64,000 nt of DNA from Hyaloraphidium curvatum SAG 235-1 (lineage: Eukaryota > Fungi > Monoblepharomycota), in the NCBI GenBank assembly GCA_025558095.1, contig JAIVFI010000013.1:62001-126000 (forward strand), read 5' to 3'. Both the position numbers and the translations under genes were made by a program. A model generated the notes under the pieces. The model ran no database searches and was not told the DNA's origin. It was given only the letters and a program-made list of their open reading frames with translations. The stretch's first letter is position 1. Every line of letters starts with the position of its first letter. This document shows positions 56,687-62,375 of the stretch, in pieces.

Positions 56687-57530
56687 CTACCCGGTCCTCC
56701 GCTTCTTCCTCGGGGACACGGGGCCCCCGTGCCGCCGGTGGAACTCGGCCACCGCGTGCCCAGCCCCTGTCAGGTTCTCCAGCGGCTCCCAGGTGACATC
56801 GTTCCATCCCTTCCACTGGACGCGGTACTCTGCCCCGCGATCCGTGTGCCGGCACGCCGAGATCTTGCCGACCTCGTACTCGATGTCCTCCTCGAGGTCT
56901 TCCTCCTCCGTCGTCGCCCGTTCCACCTCGAGAAGCAGCCGGTCGAGGGCCTCGAAGCAGGATCCCGGCCGGCCGAGCACGTTGGTCTGGTTCGGCTTGT
57001 GCGCCATCCCCAGGGGCCCGTCCGAGTGCAGGAACCCGTGGATGCGGAAGTTGTTCTCCCCTCCCTCGTAGGCATCCCCCGCGTGGACCTGGTCGCCGCG
57101 GAACACAAGCATGTCTCCCGTCTCCAGCACCACCCGCTCCACCCTGCCCCCCGAAGGCAGCGTGAACGGCCCCTCCCCCCGCGTCGCAAGCGCCTCGTGG
57201 ACGTTGCGCCACGAGTGCGGCCACTTGCGGACCGAGGTCCTCTGCACCGCGACGAAAAACAGCAGCGGCGCATCGCGCGCCGCCGTCGTCCGCGCCATCC
57301 ACTCGCCCGACTCGGCGGAGGGAAACGCCAGATCCGTGTGCTTGGGCTGCGCCGCGCAGCCCGGCCTGCTCATCAGCACGTCGACGTTGCGCAGCTCCCT
57401 CCCCGGAAACAGCACGCCCAAGACCCCCCTTAGCACGGCATGCAGCTCCGCGAAGCCGGGCGGGCCTGGAGCCTCCTCCCGTCGCCGGGGAGCGTCCTCG
57501 CCCCGTCGATGGCCTGGAACACGGGGGGGT
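56687..57530 (-). CDS. 2OG-Fe(II) dioxygenase (PhyH-like fold) fused to a C-terminal chromodomain; 5' end frameshifted or truncated
   Basis: AQPKHTD (HxD), GDMLVFRGDQVHAG (distal His) and NFRIH (Arg), then YEVGKISACR...EYRVQWKGWNDVTWEPLENL (chromodomain) and a basic tail PRKKRR. The upstream PVFQ...GDGRRLQA segment is in another frame. Confidence 0.72.
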
Positions 57531-57958: not shown

Positions 57959-59416
57959 ATGCCGGACGCGGTCGGATCGACACCCCCGCCCGTCGTCTCG
58001 CACTGGGACGGAGACGGCGGCATCGACAGCAGCGGCACCCTCTCGCCGCCTCCCACTTCTTTTCCCGCTGCACGGCGGCCCAGCGACAGGGGATCCGTCG
58101 GGTTCAACGGCCCGAACGGGAACGGTGCCAACGGCCTGAACCCCGGCTCGAAGATGGGCTCGCTGGGCCGGCGGGGCTCCCCCGCTGCCGTATCAGCAAA
58201 GGACATCGCGTATCTGCTGGAGCGCATGAACGTAGCCGAGGCCGTCGAGGACGACGGGGCGAGCAACGACGTGGCATCGTCCGTCGGATCGAGCGCGGTC
58301 GGGCGCTTCGAAACGAGCGACGAGCTGGAGCGGTTCAGGGAGTTCCAGGTGCTTTTGGACGCCTTTTGCGATGCTGCGACCGTCCCGGTGATGATCACCG
58401 ATGGCGACGGCCACGTGCGCTCCATCAATGGCGAGGCTCTGTCCCTATTTGGCTACGAGCGGCGCAACATCGTTGGGAAGAACATCGCGATCCTCATGCC
58501 GAAATCCGTGGCCGTCAAGCACGACTACTACATGCAGCGCTACCACTCGACCAAGATCAAGCACATCCTCCAAGACAAGCAGACACATCTGAAGGCAGTC
58601 AAGGCCGACGGCACCTCGATCCCCATCAGCCTTAAAGTCAACGAGCTCGCCCATCCCGGACACGGGGGCTCGTCTTTCGTGGCCTTCGTGCAGGACCTGA
58701 GCGCGCAGCTCGAGTACGAGCGCATCGAGCGGACCTTCTACTCCCTCCTCCCCCGACACATCGCCGACCGCATGCGCCGTGGGGACCAGGGCATCGCAGA
58801 ACAGACCGCGGCGTCGGTGCTCTTCATTGACTGCGTCAACTTCACGGCATTCTCCAACGCCGCGGCCCCGGCCGAAGTCATTGAGCTGTTGAGCCGTATC
58901 TTCCGGGTCGCCGACATTGCTGCGAAGCACTACGGCATCGAGAAGGTCAAAACCATAGGTGACTGTTACATGGGCGCCTGCTTCTTGATGCAGCAGGTAG
59001 GCTCGCGATCGGCGACGAAGCGCCCTGCGGGGCAGGACAACTCGTCGCACTACATGGACGCCCCCGTGAGGGCCGTGGAGATGTGCCTCGACGTCGTGCA
59101 GTACATCCAGCAGAACGAACAGATCCGGGTGCGGGTCGGGATCGCGACGGGGCCGGTCGTGGCCGGATGCATGGAGGGCGACCGGCCGACCTACGATCTC
59201 CTGGGGCCGACGGTCAACCTAGCGTCGAGGCTGCAGAACGTGGCACCGGCTAACGGTATTGCTGTGGACTCAGCGACGGCGGAGCAGTGCTCGCACGTCT
59301 TCCAATGGGCCGCCCCTGTGCAGCACGACCTCAAGGGCTGCGGCGACGTGGACGTCTTTATCCTGGAGGGAAGAAAGCAGCATTCGGGTACCATGGGAAG
59401 GAATCACTCTCTGTAA
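57959..59416 (+). CDS. Soluble heme-PAS (FixL-like) class III adenylate cyclase (copy 1)
   Basis: 485 aa, intronless. PAS LFGYERRNIVGKNIAILMPKSVAVKHDYYMQRY, helical YSLLPRHIADRM, and cyclase LFIDCVNFT, EKVKTIGDCYM, YDLLGPTVNLASRLQ. Confidence 0.9.
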   Translation: MPDAVGSTPPPVVSHWDGDGGIDSSGTLSPPPTSFPAARRPSDRGSVGFNGPNGNGANGLNPGSKMGSLGRRGSPAAVSAKDIAYLLERMNVAEAVEDDGASNDVASSVGSSAVGRFETSDELERFREFQVLLDAFCDAATVPVMITDGDGHVRSINGEALSLFGYERRNIVGKNIAILMPKSVAVKHDYYMQRYHSTKIKHILQDKQTHLKAVKADGTSIPISLKVNELAHPGHGGSSFVAFVQDLSAQLEYERIERTFYSLLPRHIADRMRRGDQGIAEQTAASVLFIDCVNFTAFSNAAAPAEVIELLSRIFRVADIAAKHYGIEKVKTIGDCYMGACFLMQQVGSRSATKRPAGQDNSSHYMDAPVRAVEMCLDVVQYIQQNEQIRVRVGIATGPVVAGCMEGDRPTYDLLGPTVNLASRLQNVAPANGIAVDSATAEQCSHVFQWAAPVQHDLKGCGDVDVFILEGRKQHSGTMGRNHSL

Positions 59417-59685
59417 TAGAGCTGGAATCCCCGTCTGTTGCTGCTGTTTCCTGGTCGGTTAATGTATTCGGTCTCACGATCCCGACAACAAAACTGCACG
59501 TAAGGCAGACAACGCCGACATCCACCGAGTTTGCATGAGCCACTCCTTGCGTCAGCGCCAATGTGCTTTCGCGTCCTGATCTCGATGTGGCGCGCGGCCA
59601 GAGTGGATCTTGTGTGTCCTCAAGACGACGTCATCAGAGGACCCTTGTCCTTGGGGATCAACCCCCTGCTCGACAACCATCGAAC

Positions 59686-61152
59686 ATGGGGGACACGCCC
59701 GGTTCCCCCTTTCTGTCGACCGGCGGGCTCTTCGACGGCGACGGCAAAACCAGCAGCGGCACACTGACGCCGGGCCCGGCATCGGAGCCCGGAGGGAGGA
59801 GGCCCAGCGACAGGGCCCCCCTGGGGTTCAACGGCACCAACGGGCCGGTCGGGCCGGCCGGCCAGGCCGCCAACGGAGCGGTGCCCATGTCCGGCACGAA
59901 AATGGGCTCCCAAGGCCGGTCCGGCGCGCCGCCGGCCGTGTCGGCCAAGGACATCGCGTACCTGCTCGAACGCCTGAACGCCCAGGACGGGGGCGACGAC
60001 GACATGGTCTCCTCCGTGGCAGGGTCGAGCGGCCTCGGCCACTTTGAAAGCAACGACGAGCTGGCGCGCTTCAAGGAGTTCCAGGTGCTACTGGACGCCT
60101 TCTGCGACGCTGCGACCGTGCCGGTGATGATCACGGACGGCGAAGGACACGTCCGCTCCATCAACCACGAGGCCCTTTCTCTGTTTGGCTACGAGCGCCG
60201 CAACATCGTCGGCAAGAACATCAACATGCTGATGCCCAAGTCGCTGGCCGTCAAGCACGACTACTACATGCAGCGCTATCACTCGACCAAAATCAAGCAC
60301 ATCATGATGGATAAACAGACCCATCTGAAGGCAGTCAAGGCCGACGGCACCACCTTTCCCATCAGTCTCAAGATTAATGAGCTGGCCCATCCCGGCGGCA
60401 CCGGCTCCTCGTTCGTGGGCTTCGTCCAGGATCTGACGGCGCAGCTCGAGTACGAGCGCATCGAGCGGACCTTCTATTCCCTCCTGCCCCGCCATATCGC
60501 CGACCGCATGCGTCGTGGCGACCAGAGCATTGCCGAGCAGACCGCAGCCTCAGTGCTCTTCATCGATTGTGTCGACTTTACCGCCTTCGCCAACTCAACC
60601 CCCGCCTCGGAGGTGATTGAGCTCCTCACCCGTGTGTTCCGCGCGGCCGACATTGCCGCCAAGCACTACGGCATCGAGAAGGTCAAGACCATAGGTGACT
60701 GTTACATGGGCGCCTGCTTCCTCCTTCAGCAGGCCGGTTCCCGGTCCGGAGCCAAGCGCCCTGCGGGACAGGACTCGTCCCACTTCATGGATGCTCCCGT
60801 GCGGGCGGTCGAGATGTGCCTGGACGTGTTGCAGTACATCCAGCAGAACGAGGAGGTGCGCGTGAGGGTGGGGATCGCCACGGGCGCCGTGGTTGCAGGC
60901 TGCATGGAAGGCGACCGTCCCACCTACGATCTCCTGGGGCCGACGGTCAACCTGGCCTCCCGGCTGCAGCACATGGCGCCCATCAACGGAATCGCCGTCG
61001 ATACGGCGACGGCGGAGCAGTGCTCGCACGTGTTCCAGTGGGCAAGCCCGGTGCGGCACGACATCAAGGGCTGCGGCGATGTTGATGTTTTCGTACTTGA
61101 GGGCAGGAAGCAGAGTTCGGGGGCCAAGGGAAGGGCCAGCAGTTTGGCCTAA
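59686..61152 (+). CDS. Soluble heme-PAS (FixL-like) class III adenylate cyclase (copy 2, tandem paralog)
   Basis: 488 aa, intronless. Same motifs as copy 1, with PAS and cyclase domains nearly identical at protein level. Confidence 0.9.
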   Translation: MGDTPGSPFLSTGGLFDGDGKTSSGTLTPGPASEPGGRRPSDRAPLGFNGTNGPVGPAGQAANGAVPMSGTKMGSQGRSGAPPAVSAKDIAYLLERLNAQDGGDDDMVSSVAGSSGLGHFESNDELARFKEFQVLLDAFCDAATVPVMITDGEGHVRSINHEALSLFGYERRNIVGKNINMLMPKSLAVKHDYYMQRYHSTKIKHIMMDKQTHLKAVKADGTTFPISLKINELAHPGGTGSSFVGFVQDLTAQLEYERIERTFYSLLPRHIADRMRRGDQSIAEQTAASVLFIDCVDFTAFANSTPASEVIELLTRVFRAADIAAKHYGIEKVKTIGDCYMGACFLLQQAGSRSGAKRPAGQDSSHFMDAPVRAVEMCLDVLQYIQQNEEVRVRVGIATGAVVAGCMEGDRPTYDLLGPTVNLASRLQHMAPINGIAVDTATAEQCSHVFQWASPVRHDIKGCGDVDVFVLEGRKQSSGAKGRASSLA

Positions 61153-62375
61153 GCGTGTAGGAGTAGCCTTGATGTCGCTTCGGTGTGCGGAGTGTAGGGG
61201 ACTTCGGAGCAACAACCTTTATTGAAGCAGAGAGAGCTCCACTCAAACTTCTCCAATCGATGGGAATGCCGTTGGTGCGAGCTACATTTGGCGCGCAATT
61301 GCTCAAGCTTTGTTCTTCTCGCTCATCTGTTTCGGGACTTGCAGTGGCTTTGTCAGCCCGCACGCAGCGCGTCCAGTCATCGATCGCAAATCGCAAACAC
61401 CGCTACCGCCGCCGGCCTCACACTGTCCCGACTACTCCGTCCTGGAATTTCGATCCAATAGCAGAGCTTAACAAGCGCTCAGAGGACGGATACCGGCTGC
61501 CGGGCGACAACTGGGGAAGCCAGTCGGGTGGTCTGCGAGGCCGTCCGGCCGCCCCGGACCAGACCCAGGTGCAGAGAGCACGGAGCCGGAGGGGAGGCTC
61601 CCAACGCAAGCGCCGCGGGCACTTGTGGCGGTCGCGCCCTCCGGCACCAGGACTCTCAAGCTTCGGGCTCGGGGAACACGACTCGCCGACGAAGATGGCT
61701 GCCGCGCCGCCTTTTTGCGGGCGGTAATGTATGTCACGATGCAGCTCGGAAGCTCGCCGCTTACTCCAGCGATATGCGGCACGGGACGGGACTAGGCAGA
61801 GCTGGAGGCGCCTCTGGGAAGGCAAGGTCGACGTCAAACAGATGCCTCCGGCGCTTCGTTGGACAAATTGAACACATACGTGGCCGCTGAAATGCTGGTG
61901 CTCATCTTCTTCCGATCTACGCTGGAGACGCCCGCGGGGTAGAGCACCGAGCCCACGACGACTCCATTCTCCTGCGGGGTTTCAAGCAGCAGGGAGCTCG
62001 GATGGGATGCCGATGCACTTGCGAACGCCCCATCCCGCGGCGAACGACGCCGGGCGGCGAGACGATGGGGAGCGGTTAAACCCCCTGAGCGGGTCACGTG
62101 CAGGGGTCCGGCGAGCACATCTGCCGCCCGCGCGGACTAACGTGCCCTCGAGTACAAAAGGCGGCTCCCCGCGCTCCCTCTGCCAGCACGCCAGTTCGCG
62201 CCTGAAGCAAGTCTCCTCGTTTGTTGACTGCGGTGGGTCCGCCCATCCGGGTCGGGCAGCGCGCGCTGACGATGTCTCCCTGCCCGCCCCTGCCCCCTCT
62301 CGGCTTCCCTCGCTCCCCCTTCATCCCGACCGCTCTCTCCTACTCCCGCCCGTCGCTATATCAGCCCCCACGAAG

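Follow-up and report, generated by a model that had tools for sequence, protein, structure and literature searches.

We analyzed a 64,000-nucleotide stretch of the genome of the fungus Hyaloraphidium curvatum SAG 235-1, referred to below as the window (positions 62001–126000 of contig C13 in a 31.9-Mb assembly of 55 contigs). At positions 57959–61152 of the window two genes lie in tandem, and each of them probably encodes a soluble adenylate cyclase that is regulated by a heme-binding PAS domain. Heme binding and gas regulation are properties we infer from the sequences and the predicted structures of the two proteins. The new aspect is the joining of a FixL-type heme-PAS domain to an adenylate cyclase, which makes the pair good candidates for a direct switch from a gas to cyclic AMP (cAMP) in a eukaryote.

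Gene 1 reads on the plus strand from the ATG at 57959 to the stop codon at 59416 as one uninterrupted open reading frame (ORF) and encodes 485 amino acids (protein P0001). Its paralogue gene 2 (P0002, 488 amino acids) follows on the same strand from the ATG at 59686 to the stop codon at 61152. Both proteins share one architecture, in which a disordered N-terminus is followed by a PAS domain that a helical linker connects to a class III cyclase domain. In Pfam each protein matched PAS (PF00989, E = 2e-10 and 3e-11) and Guanylate_cyc (PF00211, E = 3.5e-33 for P0001 and 1e-29 for P0002) once, the PAS region being matched by the PAS_9 model as well, and we found no further Pfam domain in either of them. 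An earlier note, made from the letters of the window alone, had described two PAS-helix-cyclase genes at this location; both ORFs were confirmed, and all sequence motifs that it quoted are present in gene 1 with the same set in gene 2. The two proteins are 77% identical across 501 alignment columns and their ATGs stand at homologous places in the paralogue alignment. The repeat unit on the DNA level is approximately 1.73 kb long and confined to the coding parts, the 269-bp spacer between the genes (59417–59685) lying outside the duplicated unit. In the whole genome these are the only two PAS-cyclase copies. The uninterrupted reading of both ORFs across all domains and their colinearity with relatives suggest that the genes are intronless.

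The PAS domain (amino acids 127–249, window 58337–58705 in gene 1; amino acids 130–252, 60073–60441 in gene 2; both on the plus strand) resembles the heme domain of FixL more than any other PAS type. When the PAS domain alone was compared with all sequences in the PDB, the best matches were without exception FixL chains (E = 1.4e-14 to 1.3e-12). DosP (EcDOS) came second with E of about 1e-6, followed by a phytochrome PAS domain at 3e-3, with other PAS types at 3e-3 or weaker. In NCBIfam the top model was FixL (NF041777, the heme-PAS part of the profile) for all four proteins tested (P0001, P0002 and the relatives P0005 and P0006). We further modelled the PAS domain with AlphaFold2 (AF2) on the basis of 100 related sequences, and the model reached a predicted local distance difference test (pLDDT) value of 94. 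A Foldseek search with this model returned FixL heme domains at ranks 1–20 and DosP at ranks 21–28. The template modelling (TM) scores of the FixL matches were up to 0.90 by query and 0.94 by target, and the root mean square deviations lay between 1.1 and 2.3 Å, except for one chain at 4.6 Å. A whole-length AF2 model from a six-sequence alignment had also been tried, but with a pLDDT of 68 its fold search caught the cyclase domain only, and the PAS-only model was used instead. Sequence identity to FixL is about 30–35%. Sequence and predicted fold thus support an assignment of the PAS domain of both genes to the FixL-like heme-PAS type, in agreement with the parallel to FixL drawn in the earlier note.

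We compared the heme pocket residue by residue, using the numbering of Bradyrhizobium FixL (BjFixL) from the PDB alignment. For the pocket residues we use the roles assigned to them in FixL, namely propionate binding by Arg206 and His214 and a distal position of Ile215, Leu236 and Ile238. The pocket stretch of gene 1, consisting of the Fα helix and the FG loop (25 residues, amino acids 179–203), is encoded at 58493–58567 on the plus strand. It includes His188 (58520–58522) at the position of the proximal His200 of BjFixL; in gene 2 the corresponding residue is His191 (60256–60258). This putative proximal histidine, which the earlier note had described as kept, is the sole invariant column across the 100 related PAS domains, and it is retained in 854 of the 882 repeats of multi-PAS relatives. 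The columns of the propionate-binding pair and of the distal hydrophobic triad are occupied in gene 1 by R194 (R206), H202 (H214), I203 (I215), L (L236) and V (I238); in gene 2 the pair is Arg197 and His205. Among the other pocket positions M192, Y203 and Y207 are identical in gene 1, and V188 is replaced by I. The residue roles are partly confirmed by PMC10765370, according to which the equivalents of R206 and I215 in Sinorhizobium FixL (SmFixL) are conserved signalling residues. The same paper places the Soret band of SmFixL at about 418 nm in the isolated protein, about 434 nm after reduction with dithionite and about 424 nm with bound CO.

At the distal Arg220 of BjFixL the two proteins differ from FixL: gene 1 has Gln208 (58580–58582, plus strand) and gene 2 Gln211, so that the arginine is absent, as the earlier note had suspected. 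The family carries a one-residue loop insertion near this column. We placed the insertion after the Arg column because P0211, which is without it, has an Arg six residues past the H214 column as in BjFixL. With this placement Gln is found in P0001, P0002 and their two closest relatives (P0003 and P0004) only. Arg stands at this column in P0005, P0006 (from Andalucia godoyi), P0175, P0209, P0211, P0234, P0240 and the diatom repeats. By this column comparison Arg is the usual distal residue of the family, and only the window genes and the two proteins nearest to them have Gln. The distal Arg (Arg220 in BjFixL, Arg97 in DosP) is important for O2 affinity and signalling, and its replacement by Gln probably retunes ligand affinity or selectivity in the lineage of the window genes. 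Since Gln is still able to donate a hydrogen bond, the proteins may nevertheless sense O2, though probably with an affinity and selectivity other than those of FixL.

The PAS domain of gene 1 is followed by a helical linker of about 35 residues (amino acids 250–284, 58706–58810, plus strand). It ends just before the first catalytic strand in the motif LLPxxIAxRxxxG, which may correspond to the “cyclase transducer element” known from cyclases of class IIIa/b. The IIIa-like cyclase domains themselves (amino acids 285–474, 58811–59380 in gene 1; amino acids 288–476, 60547–61113 in gene 2; both plus strand) contain the complete catalytic pattern D, K, D, D, N, R, as do nearly all family members. 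In gene 1 the residues lie in the motifs FID (D291), KVKT (K331), GDC (D335), YDL (D413) and NLASR (N420, R424). The metal-binding Asp pair is D291/D335 in gene 1 and D294/D338 in gene 2, and the transition-state Asn and Arg are N420/R424 and N422/R426, respectively. The closest solved cyclases by sequence were the fungal rhodopsin cyclase domain (E = 1e-21) and then mycobacterial and mammalian adenylate cyclases, and Foldseek matches to cyclase domains had TM scores of 0.8–0.9 by target. Regarding the substrate, K331 and D413 (K334 and D415 in gene 2) align with the substitutions E497K and C566D of a rhodopsin cyclase converted to ATP use, and likewise with the Lys and Asp of a mycobacterial adenylate cyclase. 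Both copies have the catalytic residues listed in the earlier note and the ATP-selecting ones, with Lys/Asp in place of the Glu/Cys of guanylate cyclases.

As all six catalytic residues are complete in one chain, the sequence fits a homodimer with two active sites. We predicted such a dimer with ESMFold2 from two copies of residues 120–485 and two hemes, in three runs and alongside three controls. The predicted homodimer had an ipSAE of 0.47 in three runs, compared to 0.00 for the best control. In the calibration of this score, 21 of 30 proteins whose solved structure is a pair of one chain came up to the mark, whereas none of 23 single-chain structures did. At least 92% of the contacts were common to the dimer runs, with a partner pLDDT of 81. 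The predicted interface is symmetric and parallel and comprises the N-cap helix (125–142), the PAS sheet (224–245), the linker and the catalytic residues 329–334 and 405–424. Within the linker, residues 256 and 263 each contact their own counterpart (256:256 and 263:263) in the predicted parallel arrangement. These predictions are consistent with the gene 1 protein acting as a parallel homodimer.

We estimated selection by Nei-Gojobori counting between the two copies. The synonymous divergence (dS) amounts to roughly 0.9. The ratio of nonsynonymous to synonymous divergence (dN/dS) is 0.09 over the PAS and cyclase domains and 0.39 over the N-terminal region; G+C at third codon positions (GC3) is 84–85%. 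Both copies have long been kept under purifying selection.

Taken as a gas-regulated enzyme, the protein would work as follows. The PAS domain would hold a b-type heme via His188 (His191 in gene 2). Binding of a diatomic gas to the ferrous iron, or a redox change of the iron, would move the FG loop and the β-sheet. This motion could be passed on by the linker helix to both catalytic domains and alter cAMP synthesis, with the catalytic interface of the predicted parallel homodimer forming two symmetric ATP sites. O2 is the most likely ligand, and NO and CO are possible. O2 turns the FixL kinase off and the DosP phosphodiesterase on; in the window proteins ligand binding may switch the cyclase either way.

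Several points weigh against regulation by a heme-bound gas. A predicted fold cannot reveal a cofactor, and heme binding, the ligand sensed and the direction of switching are what we infer; dimerisation is a prediction. Where FixL has the distal Arg, P0001 to P0004 all carry Gln. With the low confidence of the whole-length model the placement of the PAS domain relative to the cyclase is uncertain. Furthermore, the dimer score may stem from solved dimers of cyclases and of FixL that the model has memorised, and heme was outside the calibration. The loss of the distal Arg in the window-gene lineage would also suit a PAS-regulated adenylate cyclase without heme, in which a PAS domain descended from a heme-PAS ancestor binds another ligand or none and acts through dimerisation or protein contacts only; architectures of PAS and cyclase with a non-heme PAS domain are common in bacteria. 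A heme-less PAS domain would, however, be expected to lose its pocket residues, and their retention speaks against this explanation: the proximal His is the one column that never varies among the 100 relatives, the propionate-binding Arg/His and the distal hydrophobic residues are kept, and purifying selection on the PAS domain is strong. We regard a heme-free domain as unlikely. The same evidence for heme binding could also describe a cyclase that reports heme availability or the redox state of the iron (ferric versus ferrous) and not a gas. Gln in place of Arg may destabilise the oxy complex, and R200 variants of SmFixL are reported to autoxidise in air, though this is a different Arg from the distal one (PMC10765370). 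Yet the pocket is otherwise of the five-coordinate, gas-binding FixL type and not that of a six-coordinate redox sensor. It offers no conserved candidate for a sixth ligand; a His stands two residues past the Gln, but the closest relatives do not have it. A role as heme or redox reporter therefore appears quite improbable.

Two further explanations concern the product and the genes themselves. The best solved sequence match is the cyclase domain of a fungal rhodopsin guanylate cyclase, which could point to a guanylate or dual-specificity enzyme. We consider this very improbable given Lys/Asp and not Glu/Cys at both specificity positions, aligned with the ATP-converted mutant of that rhodopsin cyclase. 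The genes could also be duplicates that have fallen silent or are decaying, or foreign DNA from bacteria within the assembly, as they appear to have no introns and are separated by just 269 bp. But both frames are intact with a dN/dS of 0.09, and the GC3 of 84–85% stands within a G+C-rich window (62–73%). The genes lie inside a 759-kb contig beside a chromodomain gene, their nearest relatives are found on eukaryotic contigs, and the best 80 bacterial cyclase loci among the matches listed are without the FixL-like PAS type, leaving only the slightest chance for decay or contamination. Weighing all of these explanations, we consider regulation of the two cyclases by a heme-PAS domain reasonably probable.

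Relatives of the two proteins are few and, wherever their context is known, eukaryotic. Word-index searches returned only four close proteins. Two come from Logan assemblies (67–73% identical) and one from a JGI metagenome (46%); the fourth and only named one is ANDGO_08034 of Andalucia godoyi, annotated “Adenylate cyclase” (43%). No named fungal protein was among the matches of the profile word search. A word search with the PAS domain alone returned just the four closest proteins and is uninformative on distant relatives. An exhaustive profile search added a few further single-PAS cyclases. The contigs of two relatives (P0234 and P0266) carry eukaryote-type neighbours, namely genes for a dynein heavy chain, an SH2-kinase, a Syf1-type HAT-repeat protein and a TRAM/LAG1 protein. 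In a maximum-likelihood tree twelve single-PAS cyclases formed a clade (support 100/99) apart from cyclases with two to seven PAS domains.

The intron-bearing relatives were compared piece by piece. In the closest relative from a genome with 54% G+C (L002:5715-7021, Logan SRR26194948) the gene lies in three frame-shifted pieces, which are presumably exons. Other relatives including L001 have a continuous gene like those of the window. With the window genes and L001 continuous and L002 split, introns have presumably been gained or lost within the lineage. We also considered a conserved neighbourhood around the gene pair and rejected it, as the loci L001 and L002 have other flanking genes.

FixL-like PAS domains also occur in much larger proteins. 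A cluster of diatom proteins of about 1,480 amino acids (P0158 cluster, Conticribra weissflogii, MMETSP transcripts) contains seven FixL-like PAS domains followed by a Lys/Asp class III cyclase, and its PAS domains keep both the proximal His and the distal Arg. In proteins of 1,100–5,500 amino acids from Logan assemblies (P0121–P0172 and similar) FixL-like PAS repeats stand in tandem, numbering 8 to 13 or more; P0121 additionally bears a TmcB-type TPR region. The top total scores in the exhaustive profile search belonged to giant proteins in which at least 13 such repeats occur.

The combination of PAS and cyclase as such is common in bacteria. Among the matches listed for species-representative genomes of bacteria, the best 80 loci align chiefly with the cyclase part (about 35% identity), and in none of them did we find the FixL-like PAS type in any frame. 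Likewise none of 114 bacterial-type cyclases from the word-index search had a FixL-like PAS domain. A bacterial origin of the fusion is thus unsupported by these 80 loci and 114 cyclases, which are not proof of absence.

Further genes possibly related to gas sensing or cAMP were noticed in the same genome. On contig C29 (G000:C29, ~510.5–512.1 kb; L008:526-2118, minus strand) a 531-amino-acid frame contains another FixL-like PAS domain, which is closer to FixL (E = 4e-21) and keeps the proximal His and the equivalent of Arg220; no output domain was recognised in this frame. Two frames, at G000:C23 ~644.4–645.9 kb (L007:1261-2685, plus strand) and G000:C29 ~569.8–572.2 kb (L009:1-2382, minus strand), consist of a class III cyclase followed by a hemerythrin HHE domain (PF00211 and PF01814). 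Judged by these domains they are possibly a second, O2-, iron- or NO-linked cyclase type of this genome. We also searched for the canonical fungal adenylate cyclase Cyr1, which combines its cyclase domain with Ras-association, leucine-rich repeat (LRR) and PP2C domains. About 12 places with a cyclase domain and 27 with PP2C never coincide in the genome, although a divergent or intron-rich Cyr1 could escape this comparison. The locus on C27, covered up to position 255999 with part of the cyclase matches there, contained neither LRR nor PP2C.

Two features of the surroundings may be added. The low-complexity N-terminal region of gene 1 (amino acids 1–126, 57959–58336, plus strand) contains the stretches RRPSDR (amino acids 39–44) and DIAYLLER (amino acids 82–89), both of which are kept in the two copies. 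RRPSDR, at 58073–58090 and 59797–59814 of the window, is retained within the otherwise fast-evolving N-termini of the paralogues. It matches the RRxS consensus recognised by cAMP-dependent protein kinase and could be a candidate site for feedback phosphorylation. The upstream neighbour of the pair is divergently oriented (56687–57433, minus strand) and encodes a C-terminal chromodomain (PF00385, E = 3e-9); in its N-terminal part Pfam gave no match to a 2OG-Fe(II) dioxygenase at E 0.001.

Bacteria have well-known examples of direct oxygen sensing by heme proteins coupled to second messengers (FixL, DosP and globin-coupled cyclases). More tentatively, FixL-type heme-PAS modules might be a widespread and uncharacterised direct gas-sensing system of microbial eukaryotes. 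Its possible forms would range from single-PAS cyclases (in this fungus, the jakobid Andalucia godoyi and protists) over diatom cyclases with up to seven PAS domains to the giant repeat proteins. The exchange of Arg for Gln in the fungus could then conceivably have retuned the sensor, perhaps so that it favours NO or CO or works in another range of O2, a proposal we put forward with equal reserve. If such a system exists, the second FixL-like PAS protein and the cyclase-hemerythrin fusions of the same genome could belong to a broader network linking gas and redox signals to cyclic nucleotides. With a FixL-type heme-PAS adenylate cyclase, fungi and protists would be able to convert O2, NO or CO signals into cAMP within a single protein, independently of the Ras/G-protein control of Cyr1. 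The idea is easy to test, as the soluble proteins of about 490 amino acids could be expressed without changes. Close family members that naturally carry Gln and distant ones with Arg provide a built-in comparison for ligand tuning, and a gas-switched cAMP source might serve as a tool.

No FixL-type heme-PAS adenylate cyclase turned up in the literature searched, within an incomplete coverage of subscription journals. Described are heme-PAS kinases, phosphodiesterases and transcription factors as well as the globin-coupled adenylate cyclase of Leishmania. With Cyr1 the two proteins have the class III catalytic domain in common. They are soluble, comprise about 490 amino acids and lack its Ras-association, LRR and PP2C domains in Pfam, and with PAS and cyclase as their only domains the different architecture expected from the earlier note was borne out. 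The rhodopsin guanylate cyclase (RhGC) of Blastocladiella and Catenaria and soluble guanylate cyclase have the closest solved cyclase domains and share the layout of sensor, coiled coil and class III dimer, the dimer being a prediction here. They differ in their rhodopsin or H-NOX sensor and in the specificity residues, which are Glu/Cys compared to Lys/Asp here. HemAC-Lm of Leishmania likewise stems from a eukaryotic microbe and fuses a heme sensor to a soluble adenylate cyclase, heme binding being putative in our case; it is the sole heme-based adenylate cyclase gasoreceptor of a eukaryotic microbe in the review PMC11259077. Its O2 sensor is a globin and not a PAS domain, and neither a globin nor an H-NOX domain was found in P0001 and P0002 (Pfam, E up to 0.1). 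DosP (EcDOS) also places an enzyme of nucleotide second messenger metabolism under the control of a heme-PAS domain, but its output is a cyclic di-GMP phosphodiesterase and its sixth-ligand Met is not conserved here. The closest parallel for the sensor remains FixL of Bradyrhizobium and Sinorhizobium, with which the two proteins share the PAS fold, the proximal His, the propionate-binding Arg/His, the distal Ile/Leu/Val (Ile in FixL) and a helical linker to an output domain, which is predicted to be dimeric here. FixL is a bacterial histidine kinase with Arg220 in the distal pocket, whereas the proteins described here are eukaryotic and combine Gln at this position with a class III cyclase.

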